This document shows, piece after piece, positions 4,035 to 15,700 of a DNA stretch of 16,276 nucleotides (position 1 is the first letter of the stretch; each line of letters opens with the position of its first letter). The notes beneath the pieces were generated by a model. It was not told where the DNA came from, made no database searches, and worked only from the letters and a program-made list of their open reading frames with translations. Made by a program: the position numbers and the translations under genes. Source of the DNA: Ginkgo biloba (taxonomy: Eukaryota; Plantae; Ginkgophyta); contig JANKJI020000002.1 in the NCBI GenBank assembly GCA_024626585.2, forward strand, positions 101,858,697-101,874,972. Reading direction: 5' to 3'.

Positions 4035-4605
4035 AGATTGTTTCATTTAGAATATAGTATCCCATTTAGCTATTCCAAATGGGATAGTCCTTGGATAGTC
4101 TCATTTAGCTATGTCCAATTTAGACTGTTTTGGTGTTCCAAATAGGTCAGTCCCCAAATTATCCTATTTGGAATAGCTAAAGAACCCAAATAGGGACTGT
4201 CCCACTTAAAATAGCCAAATGGTCCAAAGGGGACAAAACCAAATCGAACTATCTTGGGATTCTAAACAAGATAGTCTATTCCAAATATGATAGCCCTTAT
4301 ACCCTATTTAGACCATTTGGCTATTCCAAATGGGAGAGTTCCATTTGGAATAGATGAATGGGATAATCTATTTCAAATTCTAAATGGGGTGTCAGGACTA
4401 TCCTATTTGGAACATATTATCCTTTTTTACTAGTTCTGAATGAGACAATCCTAGGACTATCCTATTTGGAATAGCCAAATGAGATTGTCCCATTTGGAAT
4501 AGCCAAACAAGATAATATATTCCAAATGAGACAGTCTTGGCACCCTATTTGGATCGTTTGGATTTTCTAAATGGGAGAGTCTTGGGATGATTCTATTTGG
4601 AATAC
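4035..4605. repeat. Array of short degenerate direct and inverted repeats (TATTCCAAATGGGAYAGTC / GACTATCCYATTTGGAATA); possible DNA-transposon subterminal region
   Basis: The motif recurs many times in both orientations, e.g. 4071 tattccaaatgggatagtc, 4322 tattccaaatgggagagt, 4341 ccatttggaatag, 4455 gactatcctatttggaatagccaaat, 4488 tcccatttggaatagccaaa. Confidence 0.8.
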
Positions 4606-7208: not shown

Positions 7209-8110
7209 ATGGAGAGTCATAAGACATAAATAAATTTACTATTGGCTAGGGATTTGAACAATGTCAATGTGTTGAAGAAGACCAAGGCATGATATCAACA
7301 ATGACCCAAGAAATAAACAGAGAACTGCAGTCAACAAGGATAGCCACATAAATCCCACATGGAACCACACCTTGCAATTCACCATTAATAAAGTCGAGCT
7401 ACAAAAAGGCACCCTAATTTTGGAAATTGAAATCCATACAGAGGGCACCTTCGGTGACAAAGAGATAAGCAAAGTGATTGCCCCCTTAAAGGAATTTATT
7501 AAAGACAACAATACTAATAGTGGAAATAAGAAGGTGGAGTTTGTTAGTTATCAAGTGCAAAAGCCCTCTGGGAAACCCAAGGGAATTCTTAATATGTCTA
7601 TTAAATTGGGGGGGAAATTGAAGGTTAAACAAGGTATTATGAGTAGCCTCAAGCAGGGTCATATGGAGGGTTTACAAAAATTAGTAAGAAGGACGAGCCT
7701 ATTACTGCATATCCCACCAATCTGAGTTCTTCTTCTACTTCATACCCATAAGTCATTGTCTATCCTTCTCCTCCTAATGGAAACCAATACTCGATGTGTC
7801 CTTATCCTTATCCACCACAACATGCTTACCACTTACATTAGGATTACCTGCAATCGTACCAAGATTATCCACCCCAAGGTTATCCACCTTAGGGTTATCA
7901 ACAATAATATGTTGTTTACCCTCCTATGGTTCCTCCACATCAACAACACCCACCTAGAAAGAATAAGATGGGATTAAGTTTGGGTGCAGGGTTATTGGGT
8001 GGAGCACTTGGGGGTTTGTTAATTGGGATATGATTATCGATGCTAGTGCGTATGCTCCTGGTTATAATGCGAGATATGACAATTGAGGTGATTTTGGTGG
8101 TGATTTTTAG
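7209..8110 (+). pseudogene. SRC2: SRC2-like C2-domain protein pseudogene (intronless)
   Basis: Read across frames: MESHKT*INLLLARDLNNVNVLKKTKA / INNDPRNKQRTAVNKDSHINPTWNHTLQFT...GDKEISKVIAPLKEF...FVSYQVQKPSGKPKGILNMSIKLG (SRC2-type C2 domain). This is followed by a Pro/Tyr/Gln-rich tract (DEPITAYP...YPPQGYPP*GYQQ*) and the typical tail RKNKMGLSLGAGLLGGALGGLLIG/DMIID...GDFGGDF*. Stops at 7227, 7290 and later, plus frameshifts. TATA-like tatataaa at about 7170. Confidence 0.9.
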
Positions 8111-8290: not shown

Positions 8291-9043
8291 AGAGTAGAGA
8301 AAGAGGGCCCTGGGTAGTATAATTGGCTAGGCTATAAAGAGTTGCTGGACATGGTGAGAAACCATGGATTGAAGCTTCAAGTTGTCTTGTCTTTTCACTA
8401 GTATGGAGGCAATGTTGGTGACTCTTGCAAGTACGCATATAATAAATCTTTTCTAAAAAGTTTTGGTTTTTGGTAGTTGAGGAAGATTTACAGTTTTGGC
8501 ATTTCAATCTATTTTTTCTTTGAAAAGTTTGTATAGTAGTGTGATACAAGCTATGTTGATCTTTTATGCTAATTTATATGGTTTTTTTCTATGAATTTTT
8601 TGTTCACCACTGTAGCATTCCCCTACCTTATTGGGTACTAGAAGAAATCAAGAAAAACCCAAATATGGTATACAGTAATAAGTCCAAAGGAAAAACCAAG
8701 AATATATTTCTTTAGGTTGTGATACAATAGCTTTACTAAAGGGAAGATCACTAATATAGATTTATGCTGATTATATAAGGAGTTTAGGGATATATTCAGT
8801 GATTTCCTTGGAAATGTGGTAGGTTCCCTTGAGCCTCAAATTGGTTTGGATAATGCAAAACTATGAAACTATTATCAATTATTTATTTATTTGAAATGGT
8901 TTTCTAATTTTTTTCTGAATTGGGCATGCAAAAAATTCAAGTTAGAACGGGGCCATGTGGGGAATTGAGGTAATCCCTCATATGTAGAAAGCAATGGCAC
9001 TTGGTGCTTCCTTAAAATTGGTGAGTTTCAATGCTATGACAAG
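8291..9043 (+). pseudogene. Beta-amylase (GH14, BAM1/BAM3-like) internal fragment: three exons with introns retained
   Basis: Exon about 8291-8430: [43 protein letters not shown]. GT-AG intron 8431-8615. Exon 8616 to about 8818: [52 protein letters not shown]. Exon 8932-9043: KIQVRTGPCGELR/PSYVESNGTWCFLKIGEFQCYDK, then a GT donor. The second acceptor is mutated from AG to AA. Stops and frameshifts are present and both ends of the gene are missing. Confidence 0.93.
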
Positions 9044-9409
9044 GTAGTCCTCTAGGACTCATAATTGCATAAAATAGAATTATTTAATTGTTTATAACCA
9101 TTTTGATGCCTCTAAATAGATTACTTTTAAATGACGAATCTAAAATTTAATATAATTATCGTAACTTTCTCTCTCACACAAGTGCAATGTATCATAATAA
9201 AATTTATGCATTTAAAATATTATATTTAGAAGTCTTTTATTAATTTTAGACTTTATGTAGTGTAAATTTAAATTTGCTTGTTAATTGAAAGGTTATTTTG
9301 TCCTATACTTTTGAAGATGGCAAAGTTTCTTATAATTAAACGCTTTGAATTAAAATGTATAACTACGCTTCAAATTTGATCACTGTGCTTGTCCGATACT
9401 CAAAACCAT

Positions 9410-10044
9410 GAAAATACTACGTTGTCCAAGAATTACTCAATGTGAGCCACGTTTGATTGGACGCATTGTTGTGAACAAAGAATAGGTGGTTTGAATGTGT
9501 GGAATTTTTGTGTAATGACACTGTCAAAATCCGAACAGAATATTTATATTTTGTTTTGTATGAACATTCAGTCATTGGATGGTATACGACTCGGAAACAT
9601 GATATTAAAAATCTTTCTCTAATGGCAAAGTAAGACGAATTAAAAATCTTAATAATAAAGAAATTATATTAATTATAAACAACAATTTGTTATGATAGTT
9701 TTATGCAATCGCAGGTTAAAAACCCATTTTAAAAATCAAAAGATATTTTGAAAAATAAATAATAGTGTTTCATCCTACAACAACATTATCAATTAATTGT
9801 CACTGTATGGACTATTGAAAAAATCTGAAAAAATTACACTAATCTGCCTCCCTCCAATATTCAAAACCAAAAATATACTACGTTATCCAATAATATAACC
9901 AAGAAAATACTACACTATCCGATAATATCTCAATGGGAGCCACCTTTGATTGGACGCAGTGTCGTGAACAAGGAATAGGCAGTTTGAATATGTGTAGAAA
10001 TTTTTGTGTCATCGTACCCTGTCAAATGCTGAACAGAATATTTA
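9410..10044 (+). repeat. Diverged direct repeat of about 140 bp (9410-9546 and 9903-10044)
   Basis: Both copies share gaaaatactac...ctcaatgNgagccacNtttgattggacgca...gtgaacaaNgaatagg...gaacagaatattta. Confidence 0.9.
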
Positions 10045-10610
10045 GCAACGGACTAGTTGTTTCTCGTGGCAAATAATTGCCACAGGTCCCGTCCCTTTCT
10101 TGCTAAACAAAGAAACCAAAGAAACTTCAATTACATTTCAAATTCTTAATTATCAGTTGCACCGTGAGTAAAGGGCAATTTTTTCCAAAGGGACAGTGGC
10201 CAGATGTCTCCCATTTATAACAGGGGCGAGTTTTCCAATTGAGTGGTCTCTGAAACGATCCATTGGTAGTCGTCGGCCCCAAGCTGATAGCCTCGCTCTC
10301 CCTTCTTATTACACATTTAGGCGATGCATCATTAAGGATTCCAATTCTTTGTTTCTATATTAACAATGAGAATAAATTATTTACAGAATTTATCTCAGGA
10401 AATCATTTTTTTTCACTTATTCTTAAGCATAGCGTTGCAATTTACGTTAGGAAAGTAGTTCTTCTGTTATTCCTAATAATTATGTTGGAATTTACCCCAA
10501 GAAACCAATTATTTACAAAATGGACCAATGAACTCAGAAAAAAAGTTAAATTTCTAAAAATCTGAACACTTCCAGGCCACTTAAGCTAATATAATTCCAA
10601 ATATACTCAC

Positions 10611-10790
10611 AGGCAGGTGACCGATGATAGTCAAGTCGTTCTTAGGTGGAGTTTCTTGTACAACAGGGGCGAAATTTCCAGAGAGATACTTTTTCCAGGG
10701 ATCGAACAACTATGTCAATAAGCCAAGAAAGCACCCCACTGGCCGGCCATTCGTGGTTACATTGCTATGTTCAAGCTCCTGCTTCGCCAT
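10611..10790 (-). pseudogene. CCD1: Carotenoid cleavage dioxygenase 1-like exon 1 (orphan fragment)
   Basis: 60 codons: MAKQELEHSNVTTNGRPVGCFLGLLT*LFDPWKKYLSGNFAPVVQETPPKNDLTIIGHLP, followed directly by a GTGAGT donor (10610-10605). YLSGNFAP..ETPP..DL...GHLP is the conserved CCD1 N-terminal motif. In-frame TAG at 10712-10710. The next expected sequence (ECLNGEFVRVGPNP) was not seen in the window. Confidence 0.88.
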
Positions 10791-10870
10791 GGATTCATTT
10801 GACAAAATATTTATTCCCTTGGAAAAATGCTCTTCTTTTCTTGATTGGCTGCAGCAAGAGCATCTTTAAA

Positions 10871-11056
10871 AACTATTTTAACTCCCAGTTCCAAATCACC
10901 CATGAATTTGCAGAACTGTTTTAACTCTCGGTTTCAAATCGCCCATGAGTTCACAGATAGACGACTATACCAAGGGCACTGCAACATTTCGATTCAATAT
11001 CCATGTGTTAATGCTATTCCATATGGTTCAGACGGTTCCAAATCACCGATGAATTT
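10871..11056 (+). repeat. 43-bp tandem repeat (2 copies, 10871-10957) plus a partial third copy (11033-11056)
   Basis: aactattttaactcccagttccaaatcacccatgaatttgcag / aactgttttaactctcggtttcaaatcgcccatgagttcacag / cggttccaaatcaccgatgaattt. Confidence 0.85.
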
Positions 11057-11230
11057 TTAGTTTGCAAGGAAAGGTAACAACATCAAAATCAAATGCATCA
11101 ATTCACAACAGCGCTCAAATCAATTAACAACAACAACATTTATTAAAATGAGGTGACGTTTGGCCAATCATGTGACTCTCGATGCACGAGATATCAAATA
11201 GAAATCAAATGATTTTTTTTTTTTATCGGA

Positions 11231-11484
11231 CCCGAAAGCATTATCAAAGGTGATTTGTAAAGAATATTGAATTATTATTTTTAGTCGGTGGATTGTAATG
11301 TTTTAGTAGTATGGACCCAAAAACATTATCAAAAGTGATTTACAAAGAATATTTAATTATTATTTTTAGTCGGTGGATTGTAATGTATTAGTAGTATAGA
11401 CCCAAAAATATTATCAAAGGTGATTTGCAAAGAATATTTAATTATTATTTTTAATCGGTGGATTGTAATGTTTTAGTAGTATGA
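11231..11484 (-). repeat. Three tandem copies of the Helitron 5' terminus (85, 85 and 84 bp)
   Basis: Units 11231-11315, 11316-11400 and 11401-11484 are near-identical. On - they begin TCCATACTACTAA, TCTATACTACTAA and TCATACTACTAA respectively. Confidence 0.92.
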
Positions 11485-11486
11485 TA

Positions 11487-11730
11487 GTAAATGCTCACTA
11501 CTGCTCTCGGCCGCTGCCCCACATTTACTTCGAATGAACAAAGAAACTTTCGAATAAAAAAAATTTCTCACGCGTAGTCAAGATGTTTTTCGTCTTTTTT
11601 TTTGAGAAGTTGTTTTGTACGAACATTCAGTCATCGGATGGTATACGACTCCTGTAATTGTTCACTACTGCTCGCCAGCTGCTCCACATTTGCTTCGAAG
11701 GAACGAAAAACTTTCGAATAAAAAAAAATT
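11487..11730 (+). repeat. Direct repeat of about 78 bp (11487-11565 and 11654-11730); 11610-11651 also repeats 9551-9592
   Basis: tcactactgctc...gctgcYccacatttRcttcgaa...aaactttcgaataaaaaaaa occurs twice. The 42-bp block ttgttttgtaYgaacattcagtcatYggatggtatacgactc has two mismatches, both at CpG. Confidence 0.9.
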
Positions 11731-12067
11731 GTCAACATACTGCACGGTTAATCATTGGATTCCATCTCTCCTCGTAGGTCCCGCACATGAAGCCAAAAAG
11801 AGCGTTTTTTTGGGCATATCATTGCGTCTATTGTCGCAAGTTCCACTACAGTTGTAAATTAGATTGCGCTGAAAAGATTCGTACACAAATTCACGTGATG
11901 GGATCGATTAGAGCGCGCTCAAAAGATTTGTCAAGAGATTCGTACATAAACCCATGTGATGGAAGATTCCAATGCAGCATACCATAGTTCGGATGATTCC
12001 ACTTTAATTTTTCATATCTAAATTTTGGATAATATTATTGAAATATTTATGCCACAACCGGCTGCGC

Positions 12068-12089
12068 ACGGTCAAAATATTTTGACCGT
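12068..12089. promoter_or_regulatory. Perfect 22-bp palindrome with two inverted W-boxes in the TNL proximal promoter
   Basis: acggtcaaaatattttgaccgt contains GGTCAA (12070-12075) and TTGACC (12082-12087). A TATA-like ctattta lies at about 12112 and the ATG at 12249. Confidence 0.7.
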
Positions 12090-12248
12090 ATTGTGCGCTT
12101 GCGATGTTTTCTATTTAGTTCCCCATTCCAATCTCAACCTTCGTTCATAAACATCCATTCCTTGCTTTCTTCCTTATCGTGTGCGAGGCTCCGTTTCCAT
12201 TGGATTTTCCATCATTTCTTGAGCAATTGCATGCCTGATTAAGATAAT

Positions 12249-12772
12249 ATGGCTCTTGTTAAAGGCTCCCCTGCTTCCTCCTCTCGCCATGTTAATTCAG
12301 AGGAAACTCCAACCAGTACGCGGAGGATGAAGAAATACGTTGTTTTCATCAACCACAGGGGGTTGGACGTGAAGGACACGATAGCATCTCATATTTATGA
12401 TCTCCTTGATCTTCGTGGTGTTCCTACGTTTCTTGACAGAGAAGAATTGGAAGGCGGAGATGACTTTCCGGAGGCCATAAGAGAAGCCATTGCTTTTTCC
12501 ACAGTTCATATTGCCATCTTCTCCCCTCGCTATGGGGAATCAAGTTGGTGTCTACGCGAATTAGCTTTGATGGTTAAAACTGCAGGTGCCACCATCATTC
12601 CCGTCTTCTGGAATGTCACTCCCGAAGAAATTCGGTGGGCTAAGAAGGGAAACTTCGCCGACGCTTTTAGTAAACATTATGAGAGATATTCTCCAGAAAT
12701 TGTGAACGAATGGAAGGATGCCCTAAACCAGGTTTCCAACACTTCTGGCTTGCTATTCAGTGAGTTTAAAGG
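12249..12772 (+). CDS. TNL exon 1: TIR domain
   Basis: YVVFINHRGLDVK...FLDREEL...AIFSPRYGESSWCLRELALM...IIPVFWNVTP...VNEWKDALNQVS. The NADase catalytic Glu position (WCLxEL) is retained. Donor GG|GTAAG. Confidence 0.96.
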
Positions 12773-15700
12773 GTAAGAAATGGTATTATAGTTGAAGTTT
12801 CTTTTTTCTTTTCAGAGTCGATTAGAACACATATATGTGTGTAGTAACATTTCTAATTCCGACTATTCCTTTCAATGGATTTGTTCCTTACACAGAGAGC
12901 TTGCAAGAAAGGTTGTGGATCAAGTGATGAAGAAACTGAGTAGTACCCAAAGATTATATGTACCTGAATCTCCCATTGGATTGGAAAGCCATGTGAACAA
13001 GTTAAAAAATTACATTCTTCGAAGTAGGAGGGCGAAAAAGAATGTGATTTGTGTGGGGATAATCGGAATCGCCGGCATTGGTAAGTCAACTCTTGCAAAA
13101 GCCCTTTTTAACGACATTGGGTCTAATTTTTCGAGATCTGCCTACATAGAAGATGTTAAAGGTCAAGTGGAAACGAATGGATTGCAACACATTCAGAAGA
13201 TCCTCCTTCGGGAATTGCTGCGCTATGGTTTTGAAGTATCCAATTCGAGTCAAGGTCAGCAGATGCTAAGAGATTGGCTGACTCACGAAGATGCTCTTAT
13301 TGTTTACGATAACATTGAATACGATTACCAAATGAATGCTATATTGTTCGAAGATGTTCTCAAACCGGGCAGCACAGTCATAGTCACAACCCGTGACAAA
13401 AGCATATTCGGACGGTGGAATAGTCATCTTGAATATGAATTGACAGGGCTGGCCTATTGGCAATCAAAAGAGCTCCTTTGCAGGCATGCTTTTCACAGTG
13501 ATCGCCCTTCCGCTTACTTCAAAGGCCTGGTGGATCAGTTTGTAGAAGTGTGCAAAGGCTTACCGTTGGCATTAGAGGTCTGTGGCGGTCAGCTTTACAA
13601 ACAATCCCCTGATAAGTGGAAAATTATTTTGAAAAGTTTTTCTCGAATACCAGAGATTCAAAGCATGCTGCGTGTGAGCTGCGAACAACTGAATGAAAAA
13701 CAGAAAGAAATATTCTTAGATATAGCTATTTTCTTTCATGGCCAAAACTGTCAAACAATTACACGGATATGGGAGGAGGAACCAGAGTATTTCTCTTATG
13801 ATCTTGAAATACTCAAAAGAAAGTGTATGATTAAATTGGATTATAATAACATGGTGAGAATGCACGATCTGTTTCGGGAGCTAGGAAGAGCGATTGTCGA
13901 TGAAGAATGCCCCAAATATCCAGGACGCCGCAGTCGCCTCTGGCGGCCCAGTGACGTGAAAGAAGTATTGACAAATTTCACGGTATTTTCCTTGATTAAT
14001 GTTTTCTTTTCTGTATTCATTTCTTTTCCATCTGTATATTTGGTTCCAACTATTATCTTTTATATATATCATTTCCGTGTCGATGTAATGGGAGGCGCAT
14101 CCAACTTATTTTAAATTGGAAAATTACAGAGAGAAAATATATGATTTTGGTCTCTGCAATTAAACATTGCCAAATTTTGTCCAATAAATTCAGGGAACTG
14201 AAAGTGTTCGTGGATTGAGCTTAGTGTCGGGAGGGACAGTGTTATGGGACGAAGACGAACTTGGCAACAGACGTGCTTGGACTACCAATTCATTTGCTAA
14301 TATGAAGGAGCTGGAGCTACTTGAGTTAAAAGACGACTGTTTAAAAGGCGATTTGGGCGAGTTGTCACGAAAGCTCTTATTTCTCCGTTGGACAAATTTT
14401 CCTTATGACCGTGTGCCTGTCGATCTCCACATGAAACAAACAAGGGTTTTAGAGCTACTTGGAGGACCAGTCTCAGGTAATACAACAACTGAATTGAATT
14501 TTCAGTTAGAAATGTCGGGAGAGGTCTAATAATGTTTGTAACTTTTCTGCAGCTTCCATTGAATTTGCGGGAGTTGAATATGAACAATTGTCATTTTCTC
14601 AACAAAGTCCCTCAATGGATAGAAAAGTTGACACGATTGCAGAAAGTGGATTTTTCAGAGTGCATATGTCTGAAAACCATTCCTGAAGACTTTTGTTATC
14701 TGGAAGCGCTGGAAGTTCTAAATTTAAGTTATTGCCGTAATTTGAAGTACCTGCCGCCTGGTATTGGACGGATGAAAAGATTGAAGGATTTGTATTTAAA
14801 TGAGTGTATCAAATTGAAGGTGTTACCAGAGTCATTTGGGGAATTGCCACAATTACAATGCCTTGACATGCGGGGATGCAAGAACGTACAGATAGTGGAG
14901 GGCAGTTTTGGAAACATCTCCACCCTCAGAACAGTGAATTTGCTGGAGTGTGGAAAGTTGGAGACGATGCCAAGCTCGCTCAGTCGTCAACGCTCTCTGA
15001 TGAGTCTTTCTCTTGGCAATTCGAGGGAGACTGTTGTTGGCACAAACTATCGTGTTGGCTTTCCGCTGAAGGAAATACCGACAACTATTGACAATCTCTC
15101 TAGTTTGTCAGTGCTATACATACAAGGATGCCCAGAGCTGAAGGAAATACCGACAACTATTGGCAATCTCTCTAATTTGTCGCACCTAGCCATATCTGGA
15201 TGCCCAGAGCTGAAGGAAATACCGGCAACTATTGGCAATCTCTCTAATTTGTTGGGGCTAACCGTATCTGAATGCCCAGAGCTGAAGGAAATACCGACAA
15301 CTATTGACAATCTCTCTAGTTTGAGGCGGCTAGACATATCTGGATGCCCAGAGCTGAAGGAAATACCGACGACAACTATTGGCAATTTCTCTAGTTTGTC
15401 GAGTCTAGAAATATGTCTATCTAACGATACGATCCTTGGTCTACATCAAATGAAACAACTAAACAGCTTGAAAGTTCACGTGTCATAAGCCTTTTCTCAG
15501 AAAAACCATTGTTGGGTGGAGGTAATTACTTATTCGATACACTCCTTTCTCTGAAGAAGTTATTATGCATTCTCAAATAATTGCTTTCATCAAAATAATT
15601 TAATGTAATCATTGTTTGTCAATCCAGCCGCTAATTTCATCTCCATGCTGTTGGTAACAGAATATGTCTGCTATTAATCACATCCATTTCACTGCGAGCG

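Follow-up and report, generated by a model that had tools for sequence, protein, structure and literature searches.

Gene-fragment-carrying non-autonomous Helitrons have been described in maize (HelA/HelB-type; HelitronFinder set, Du et al., 2008, PMC2267711), and definitions of the terminal features of Helitrons are available (PMC2267711, PMC6591975). The maize elements start with a 5' TC followed by (T/C)(C/A)TA(C/T)TA(C/A)(T/C), end with CTAG behind a subterminal palindrome, occupy an A|T target and have neither a TSD nor a TIR. In addition, they contain several unrelated gene fragments, which retain intron junctions and lie in the orientation of the element. A Helitron may also have several 5' ends (PMC6591975, PMC4588551), and both the capture of gene fragments by Helitrons and the annotation of Helitrons in gymnosperms have already been described (PMC13477047). 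Pack-MULEs and other Pack-type TIR transposons represent a second group of small non-autonomous carriers of chimeric gene fragments near genes; Pack-MULEs are characterized by long TIRs and 9-10 bp TSDs.

Here, we analyzed a 16,276-bp stretch of DNA from Ginkgo biloba (the window), for which an earlier note had proposed a Pack-Helitron upstream of an NLR gene. We consider it likely that positions 10053-11484 (minus strand) represent an old non-autonomous Helitron with captured gene fragments (Table 1); an element of this kind is an ordinary type of plant genome feature. It shares all of the above-mentioned characteristics of the maize Helitrons, but resides in a gymnosperm host and has a 5' end that is triplicated as an 85-bp tandem. 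With the multiple-5'-end Helitrons (HelitronScanner; PMC6591975, PMC4588551) it has in common more than one candidate 5' terminus per single 3' terminus, whereas in Ginkgo the candidate ends form an exact head-to-tail array of 85 bp. The long TIRs and the 9-10 bp TSDs of the Pack-MULEs are both absent. The element is classified as non-autonomous because its small ORFs (all ≤100 aa in an element of 1.4 kb) carry no Pfam match to the Rep or helicase domains of RepHel.

Table 1. Positions of the probable Helitron, its parts and its neighbours in the window
Feature	Position	Strand	Details
Probable non-autonomous Helitron, whole	10053-11484	-	1432 bp; 5' end 11484, 3' end 10053; based on termini, shuffle statistics and flank homology breakpoints
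3' terminus CTAG	10053-10056	-	host T (10052) next; direct reading
3' subterminal hairpin GTGGCAA/TTGCCAC	10066-10083	-	7-bp stem, 4-nt loop, 9 nt before CTAG
Three tandem 85-bp 5'-terminal units	11229-11484	-	starts 11484, 11400, 11315; each opens TC(-/T/C)ATACTACTAA
CCD1 exon-1 pseudo-copy	10611-10790	-	ATG 10790, in-frame TAG 10712-10710, ~10 codons missing, last residues GHLP
Splice donor GTGAGT, kept	10605-10610	-	conserved CCD1 exon 1/intron 1 junction
TTP/TZF-type CCCH zinc-finger fragment, second cargo	~10166-10255	-	C-x8-C-x5-C; 1-nt deficit before His codon
Internal 43-bp repeats	10871-11060		two tandem copies 10871-10956 and a degenerate copy 11018-11060
Left flank, host	9883-10052		paralogous to 9389-9546; similar to repeat R (11615-11638) over the last ~23 nt
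Right flank, host, module T1	11487-11570		84.5% identical to T2 at 11654-11734; homology begins 2 nt past the 5' end of the element
Neighbouring TIR-NBS-LRR (TNL) gene	12249-15488	+	TIR ORF 12249-12776, NB-ARC ORF 12792-14114, LRR ORF 14532-15488

At the 3' end, direct reading of the minus strand gave the CTAG followed by the host T, which corresponds to the CTRR 3' terminus of Helitrons. The 18-nt palindrome upstream of it (arms at 10066-10072 and 10077-10083) ends 13 nt from the 3' end, within the 10-15 nt described for the Helitron palindrome of 16-20 nt, with a stem of only 7 bp. We scanned the window for perfect hairpins with CTRR and T at a distance of 4-15 nt downstream, using 100 dinucleotide shuffles as background. 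For a stem of at least 7 bp and a GC count of at least 4, the site at 10066-10083 was the only one in the 16-kb window, compared to 0.07 expected, whereas relaxing the stem to at least 6 bp resulted in three sites with 3.5 expected. This confirms the 3' hairpin plus CTAG that the earlier note had seen. DNA folding also showed the hairpin stem, but its short length of 7 bp, a GC content of 57% and a fold z-score of -1.96 count against a Helitron. In contrast to the maize 3' criterion (two CGs 9-12 nt apart), the Ginkgo hairpin has neither paired CG dinucleotides nor an AA loop, and we treated this as a difference between families and not as a failure. A metagenome scan for the 3' palindrome plus CTAG yielded a single contig, L002. 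It is bacterial and has only the 20-nt palindrome in common with the Ginkgo element, and was rejected as a chance match.

The 5' end also agrees with the Helitron structure. On the minus strand, the element opens with A|TC at 11485|11484-11483 (direct reading), and its last 256 bp (11229-11484) consist of three head-to-tail units of 85 bp with 91-93% identity, which start with TCATACTACTAA, TCTATACTACTAA and TCCATACTACTAA. The search criterion for the 5' end of maize Helitrons, TC[TC][CA]TA[CT]TA[CA][TC][TCA][TA] (Du et al., 2008, PMC2267711), was applied as TCYMTAYTAMYHW with 13 positions, a consensus that stems from a plant very distant from Ginkgo. It matched three times in the window, compared to 0.28 matches expected, and none of 200 shuffles reached three. 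Two of these three matches coincide with the points where the inner units begin (11315 and 11400); these starts agree with the consensus on the minus strand at all 13 positions and lie at the 5' boundary. The outermost unit (11484) is one base short of it, and this missing base together with the origin of the consensus in maize counts against the Helitron interpretation. While the earlier note had pointed to the 5' TC alone, the consensus matches in two units suggest that the 5' end is stronger evidence than had been recognized. Furthermore, the 5' and 3' signals are located on one strand, in the correct order and 1.26-1.43 kb apart.

The triplication of the 85-bp unit probably arose by slippage or unequal exchange. 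The units and the internal 43-bp repeats have a 17-nt motif in common, in inverted orientation. Such subterminal repeats are not standard in Helitrons. Five copies of the motif, CAAATCACC, are located in the element (10871-11060 and 11244-11430): the 43-bp repeats contain three of them (plus strand) and the 85-bp units two (minus strand). Allowing up to one mismatch, 11 matches were counted in the window with 2.9 expected.

Short repeated modules make up the flanking host sequence, the homology of which was analyzed by blastn of the region against the window together with a repeat search. Read on the minus strand, the element is bracketed by a host A (11485) and a host T (10052), and repeat R has AT at the aligned position. 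By repeat search and direct reading, neither a TIR nor a TSD was found at the insertion boundaries, in agreement with the A|T target without duplication that had been claimed before. A local paralog (paralog A, 9389-9546 and 9551-9592) matches 9883-10044 at 80% and 11610-11651 at 95% identity, and the homology of the left flank to it extends up to 8 nt from the CTAG. Taking also the T1/T2 homology of the right flank into account (Table 1), both ends of the element are located 2-8 nt from points at which the homology to local paralogous repeats breaks off. Over its final ~23 nt, the left flank aligns to repeat R up to the junction, where R reads GGA|TGG; 39 of 2000 shuffles reached this similarity (p~0.02).

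In comparison with paralog A alone, the insertion would comprise 10045-11609. Host modules form a ~165-bp tandem in the region 11487-11775 (T-y-R, then T-R), and paralog A is therefore not able to fix the right-hand breakpoint. Excising 10053-11484 results in roughly L-R-T, with a gap of 13 nt relative to R-T2 and of ~24 nt relative to paralog A. For the empty site that the earlier note described, both flanks align to local paralogous sequence, but only with these gaps, and the reconstruction is not a clean one. The gaps, the variability of the host repeats and the p-value of ~0.02 for the left flank and R speak against a Helitron insertion. A 32-bp tandem (9853-9928) is part of the modules L, R and T (9389-9592, 9853-10052 and 11487-11775). 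Neither Rfam nor tRNA scans, run on 9000-12300 and on the window, returned a match, and the flanking repeats are therefore not recognizable as a SINE. Taken together, the termini, the match to a published 5' consensus and the breakpoints of flank homology support the non-autonomous (Pack-)Helitron structure.

These data have to be weighed against two other explanations for the boundaries. First, the region could be a mosaic of gene fragments that was assembled by another route, such as double-strand-break repair with filler DNA, segmental duplication or another Pack-type DNA transposon, and its Helitron-like termini would have arisen by chance. The 5 kb upstream of the TNL gene are indeed full of fragments, including a C2 pseudogene (7276-7722) and a GH14 beta-amylase (8318-8712), the flanks consist of short repeats that vary, and no clean empty site results from the reconstruction. 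We nevertheless regard this origin as unlikely, because the 5' consensus (0.28 expected) and the 3' hairpin with CTAG (0.07 expected) co-occur on one strand in the correct order, each of them at an independent homology breakpoint, and because neither TIR nor TSD is present. Secondly, the 3' end could be real and the 5' boundary misplaced, with the 85-bp array being an unrelated minisatellite, the true 5' end elsewhere or lost, and the element truncated or composite. It is known that 5' ends of Helitrons are hard to call and that multiple candidates are common (PMC6591975); moreover, the outermost unit is one consensus base short and the insertion appears to reach 11609 if paralog A is taken as reference. 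Against this, the T1/T2 homology begins 2 nt past the outermost TC, all three units open with the Helitron 5' motif and the host tandem T-y-R at 11487-11775 accounts for the discrepancy with paralog A, which makes a misplaced boundary quite improbable.

Within the probable Helitron, we analyzed two gene fragments. The first is the CCD1-like exon, which runs from the ATG (10790-10788) to 10611 and the adjoining donor (10610-10605) in the orientation of the element, exactly as had been proposed. Translation from 10790 yields 26 codons up to the TAG at 10712-10710, followed by LFDPWKKYLSGNFAPVVQETPPKNDLTIIGHLP and the GTGAGT. The sequences before and after the stop were searched separately, not as a joined model. 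In the PDB, the 33-aa piece matched a carotenoid 9,10-dioxygenase (residues 49-74 of 543, E=3.3e-5), and a maize NCED only at E=1.4. Among 1.84 billion representatives, nine matches with E<1e-3 were obtained. Six of these have an aligned stretch, and each of the six is an N-terminal sequence of the CCD1 type. Four of the six read GHLP|V... into the intron; Pfam RPE65 is present in two, one of which bears the name carotenoid 9,10(9',10')-cleavage dioxygenase 1-like. A protein search returning CCD1-family sequences had been suggested beforehand as a check, and these matches provide it. The 42-aa CCD1 piece had no relatives among proteins of 23-73 aa in a word search.

At the same exon-intron junction, a plant contig (L001) reads CCT|GTAAGTA. 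The retained exon-intron boundary argues for capture at the DNA level and against retroposition. Aligned by hand with this contig, the Ginkgo copy is ~10 codons short between a conserved G and YLSGNF, and a weak match in an alternative frame (PASGVLSWLIDIV versus P.NGVTSKVIDFV) suggests a pair of frameshifts. A full RPE65-family catalytic domain and an open frame are both absent: exon 1 is the sole part present, with the TAG and the missing codons, and tblastn with a 347-aa CCD1 detected no further CCD1 exon in the 16-kb window. The CCD1 copy is a fragmentary pseudo-exon rather than a gene. The idea of a complete element with a CCD1 exon as cargo has to be modified in this respect; the copy of exon 1 is there, but as a pseudo-exon, and a zinc-finger fragment is carried as well. 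It is extremely improbable that a CCD1 pseudogene decayed in situ without being transposon cargo: the exon does retain its ATG, the donor and adjoining non-coding sequence, but the tblastn search found no other exon in the window and the fragment lies between both termini, beside an unrelated zinc-finger fragment. Promoter-like words (ACGT core, CCAAT, CATGTG) cluster at 11148-11175 on the minus strand, ~370 bp upstream of the CCD1 ATG, and this cluster could be a piece of a captured CCD1 promoter.

The second fragment (~10166-10255, minus strand), which was absent from the earlier description, encodes ...WKTRPCYKWETSGHCPFGKNC... with a C-x8-C-x5-C motif. It matched Pfam zf-CCCH with E=1.3e-5 (25.4 bits, cutoff 20.5) and C3H1/tristetraprolin fingers in the PDB with E-values from 2.4e-6 to 1.2e-5. 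The third Cys codon is separated from the would-be His codon CAC by 8 nt instead of 9, indicating that the zinc finger is frameshifted. Two unrelated gene fragments between the termini, both in the orientation of the element, are the typical look of gene-capturing Helitrons. A 22-nt stretch of the zinc-finger fragment (10216-10237) is identical at 19 of 22 positions to a stretch of the CCD1 fragment (10659-10680), but the two are read in different frames. The zinc-finger copy covers KTRPC, which departs from the usual KTELC. This shared stretch could be due to chance, a conversion patch or a template-switch junction.

Based on established Helitron biology, a possible history of the element can be outlined. 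RepHel supplied in trans would mobilize the element by nicking at the 5' TC and unwinding toward the 3' end until it halts at the subterminal hairpin and CTAG, and the element would then be pasted between a host A and T without target-site duplication. Genomic DNA would have been acquired at the DNA level, comprising the CCD1 first exon, its splice donor and presumably some of the intron, and a TTP-type CCCH zinc-finger fragment would have been acquired as well, both cargoes in the orientation of the element. Later, the 5'-terminal 85 bp may have been triplicated in tandem, which would have created three alternative TC...ATACTACTAA starts, each of them a potential one. Subsequent decay would explain the stop and the deletions in the CCD1 exon and the frameshift in the zinc finger. 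Judging from its sequence, the cargo appears to encode nothing functional. The insertion is probably old and fixed, since the 85-bp units diverge by 7-9% and the cargo is decayed.

On the other side of the element, the ORFs of the TNL gene matched the Pfam domains TIR (5.6e-29), NB-ARC (3e-24) and LRR (2.6e-27). The best relatives of the NB-ARC ORF (12792-14114) are Ginkgo biloba gene models (EukProt Gb_) with up to 78% identity. The ATG of the TNL gene at 12249 is located 765 bp from the element and 1459 bp from the CCD1 ATG in head-to-head orientation; both distances are as given in the earlier note. An influence of the element on the TNL gene is possible and a matter of speculation, and the same applies to the effects suggested in the earlier note, namely imported cis-elements, a divergent transcript, spreading methylation and siRNAs that link the locus to CCD1. 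In a far-reaching version, the element brought the promoter-proximal region and the first exon of CCD1 head-to-head with the TNL gene and is still transcribed. This would give rise to a divergent transcript or one that combines CCD1 and the zinc finger, or else to small RNAs and methylation, with an effect on the TNL promoter or, in trans, on CCD1. We consider this scenario very unlikely.

The element is a hand-verified example which indicates that canonical Helitrons exist in Ginkgo and captured gene fragments there, with a 5' motif as in maize, while the earlier basis for gymnosperm Helitrons was mainly automated genome annotation. For annotation, it follows that none of the pieces of CCD1, zinc finger, C2 and beta-amylase should become a gene call. 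The promoter region of the TNL gene is a patchwork of repeats and pseudogene pieces and as such a starting point for studies of NLR regulation; the finding alone leaves the knowledge of Helitrons and NLRs unchanged.

Four unrelated gene fragments, namely C2, beta-amylase, CCD1 and zinc finger, are located in the 5 kb upstream of the TNL gene. The SRC2-like C2-domain pseudogene (7276-7722, plus strand; Pfam C2 E=2.3e-7) continues to ~8040, where stops interrupt both a proline-rich tail and a hydrophobic end, and appears to be intronless. The beta-amylase pseudogene (Pfam Glyco_hydro_14) consists of pieces at 8318-8398 and 8590-8712 on the plus strand, with intron-like sequence in between as well as stops and frameshifts, and probably extends to ~9050. 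No convincing termini of a second Helitron were found around the C2 and beta-amylase fragments. Further upstream, the region 4060-4600 is densely filled with units of ~28 bp that resemble TTTGGAATAGCCAAA (row 4460-4513 of Tandem Repeats Finder), a field that probably belongs to another repeat element.
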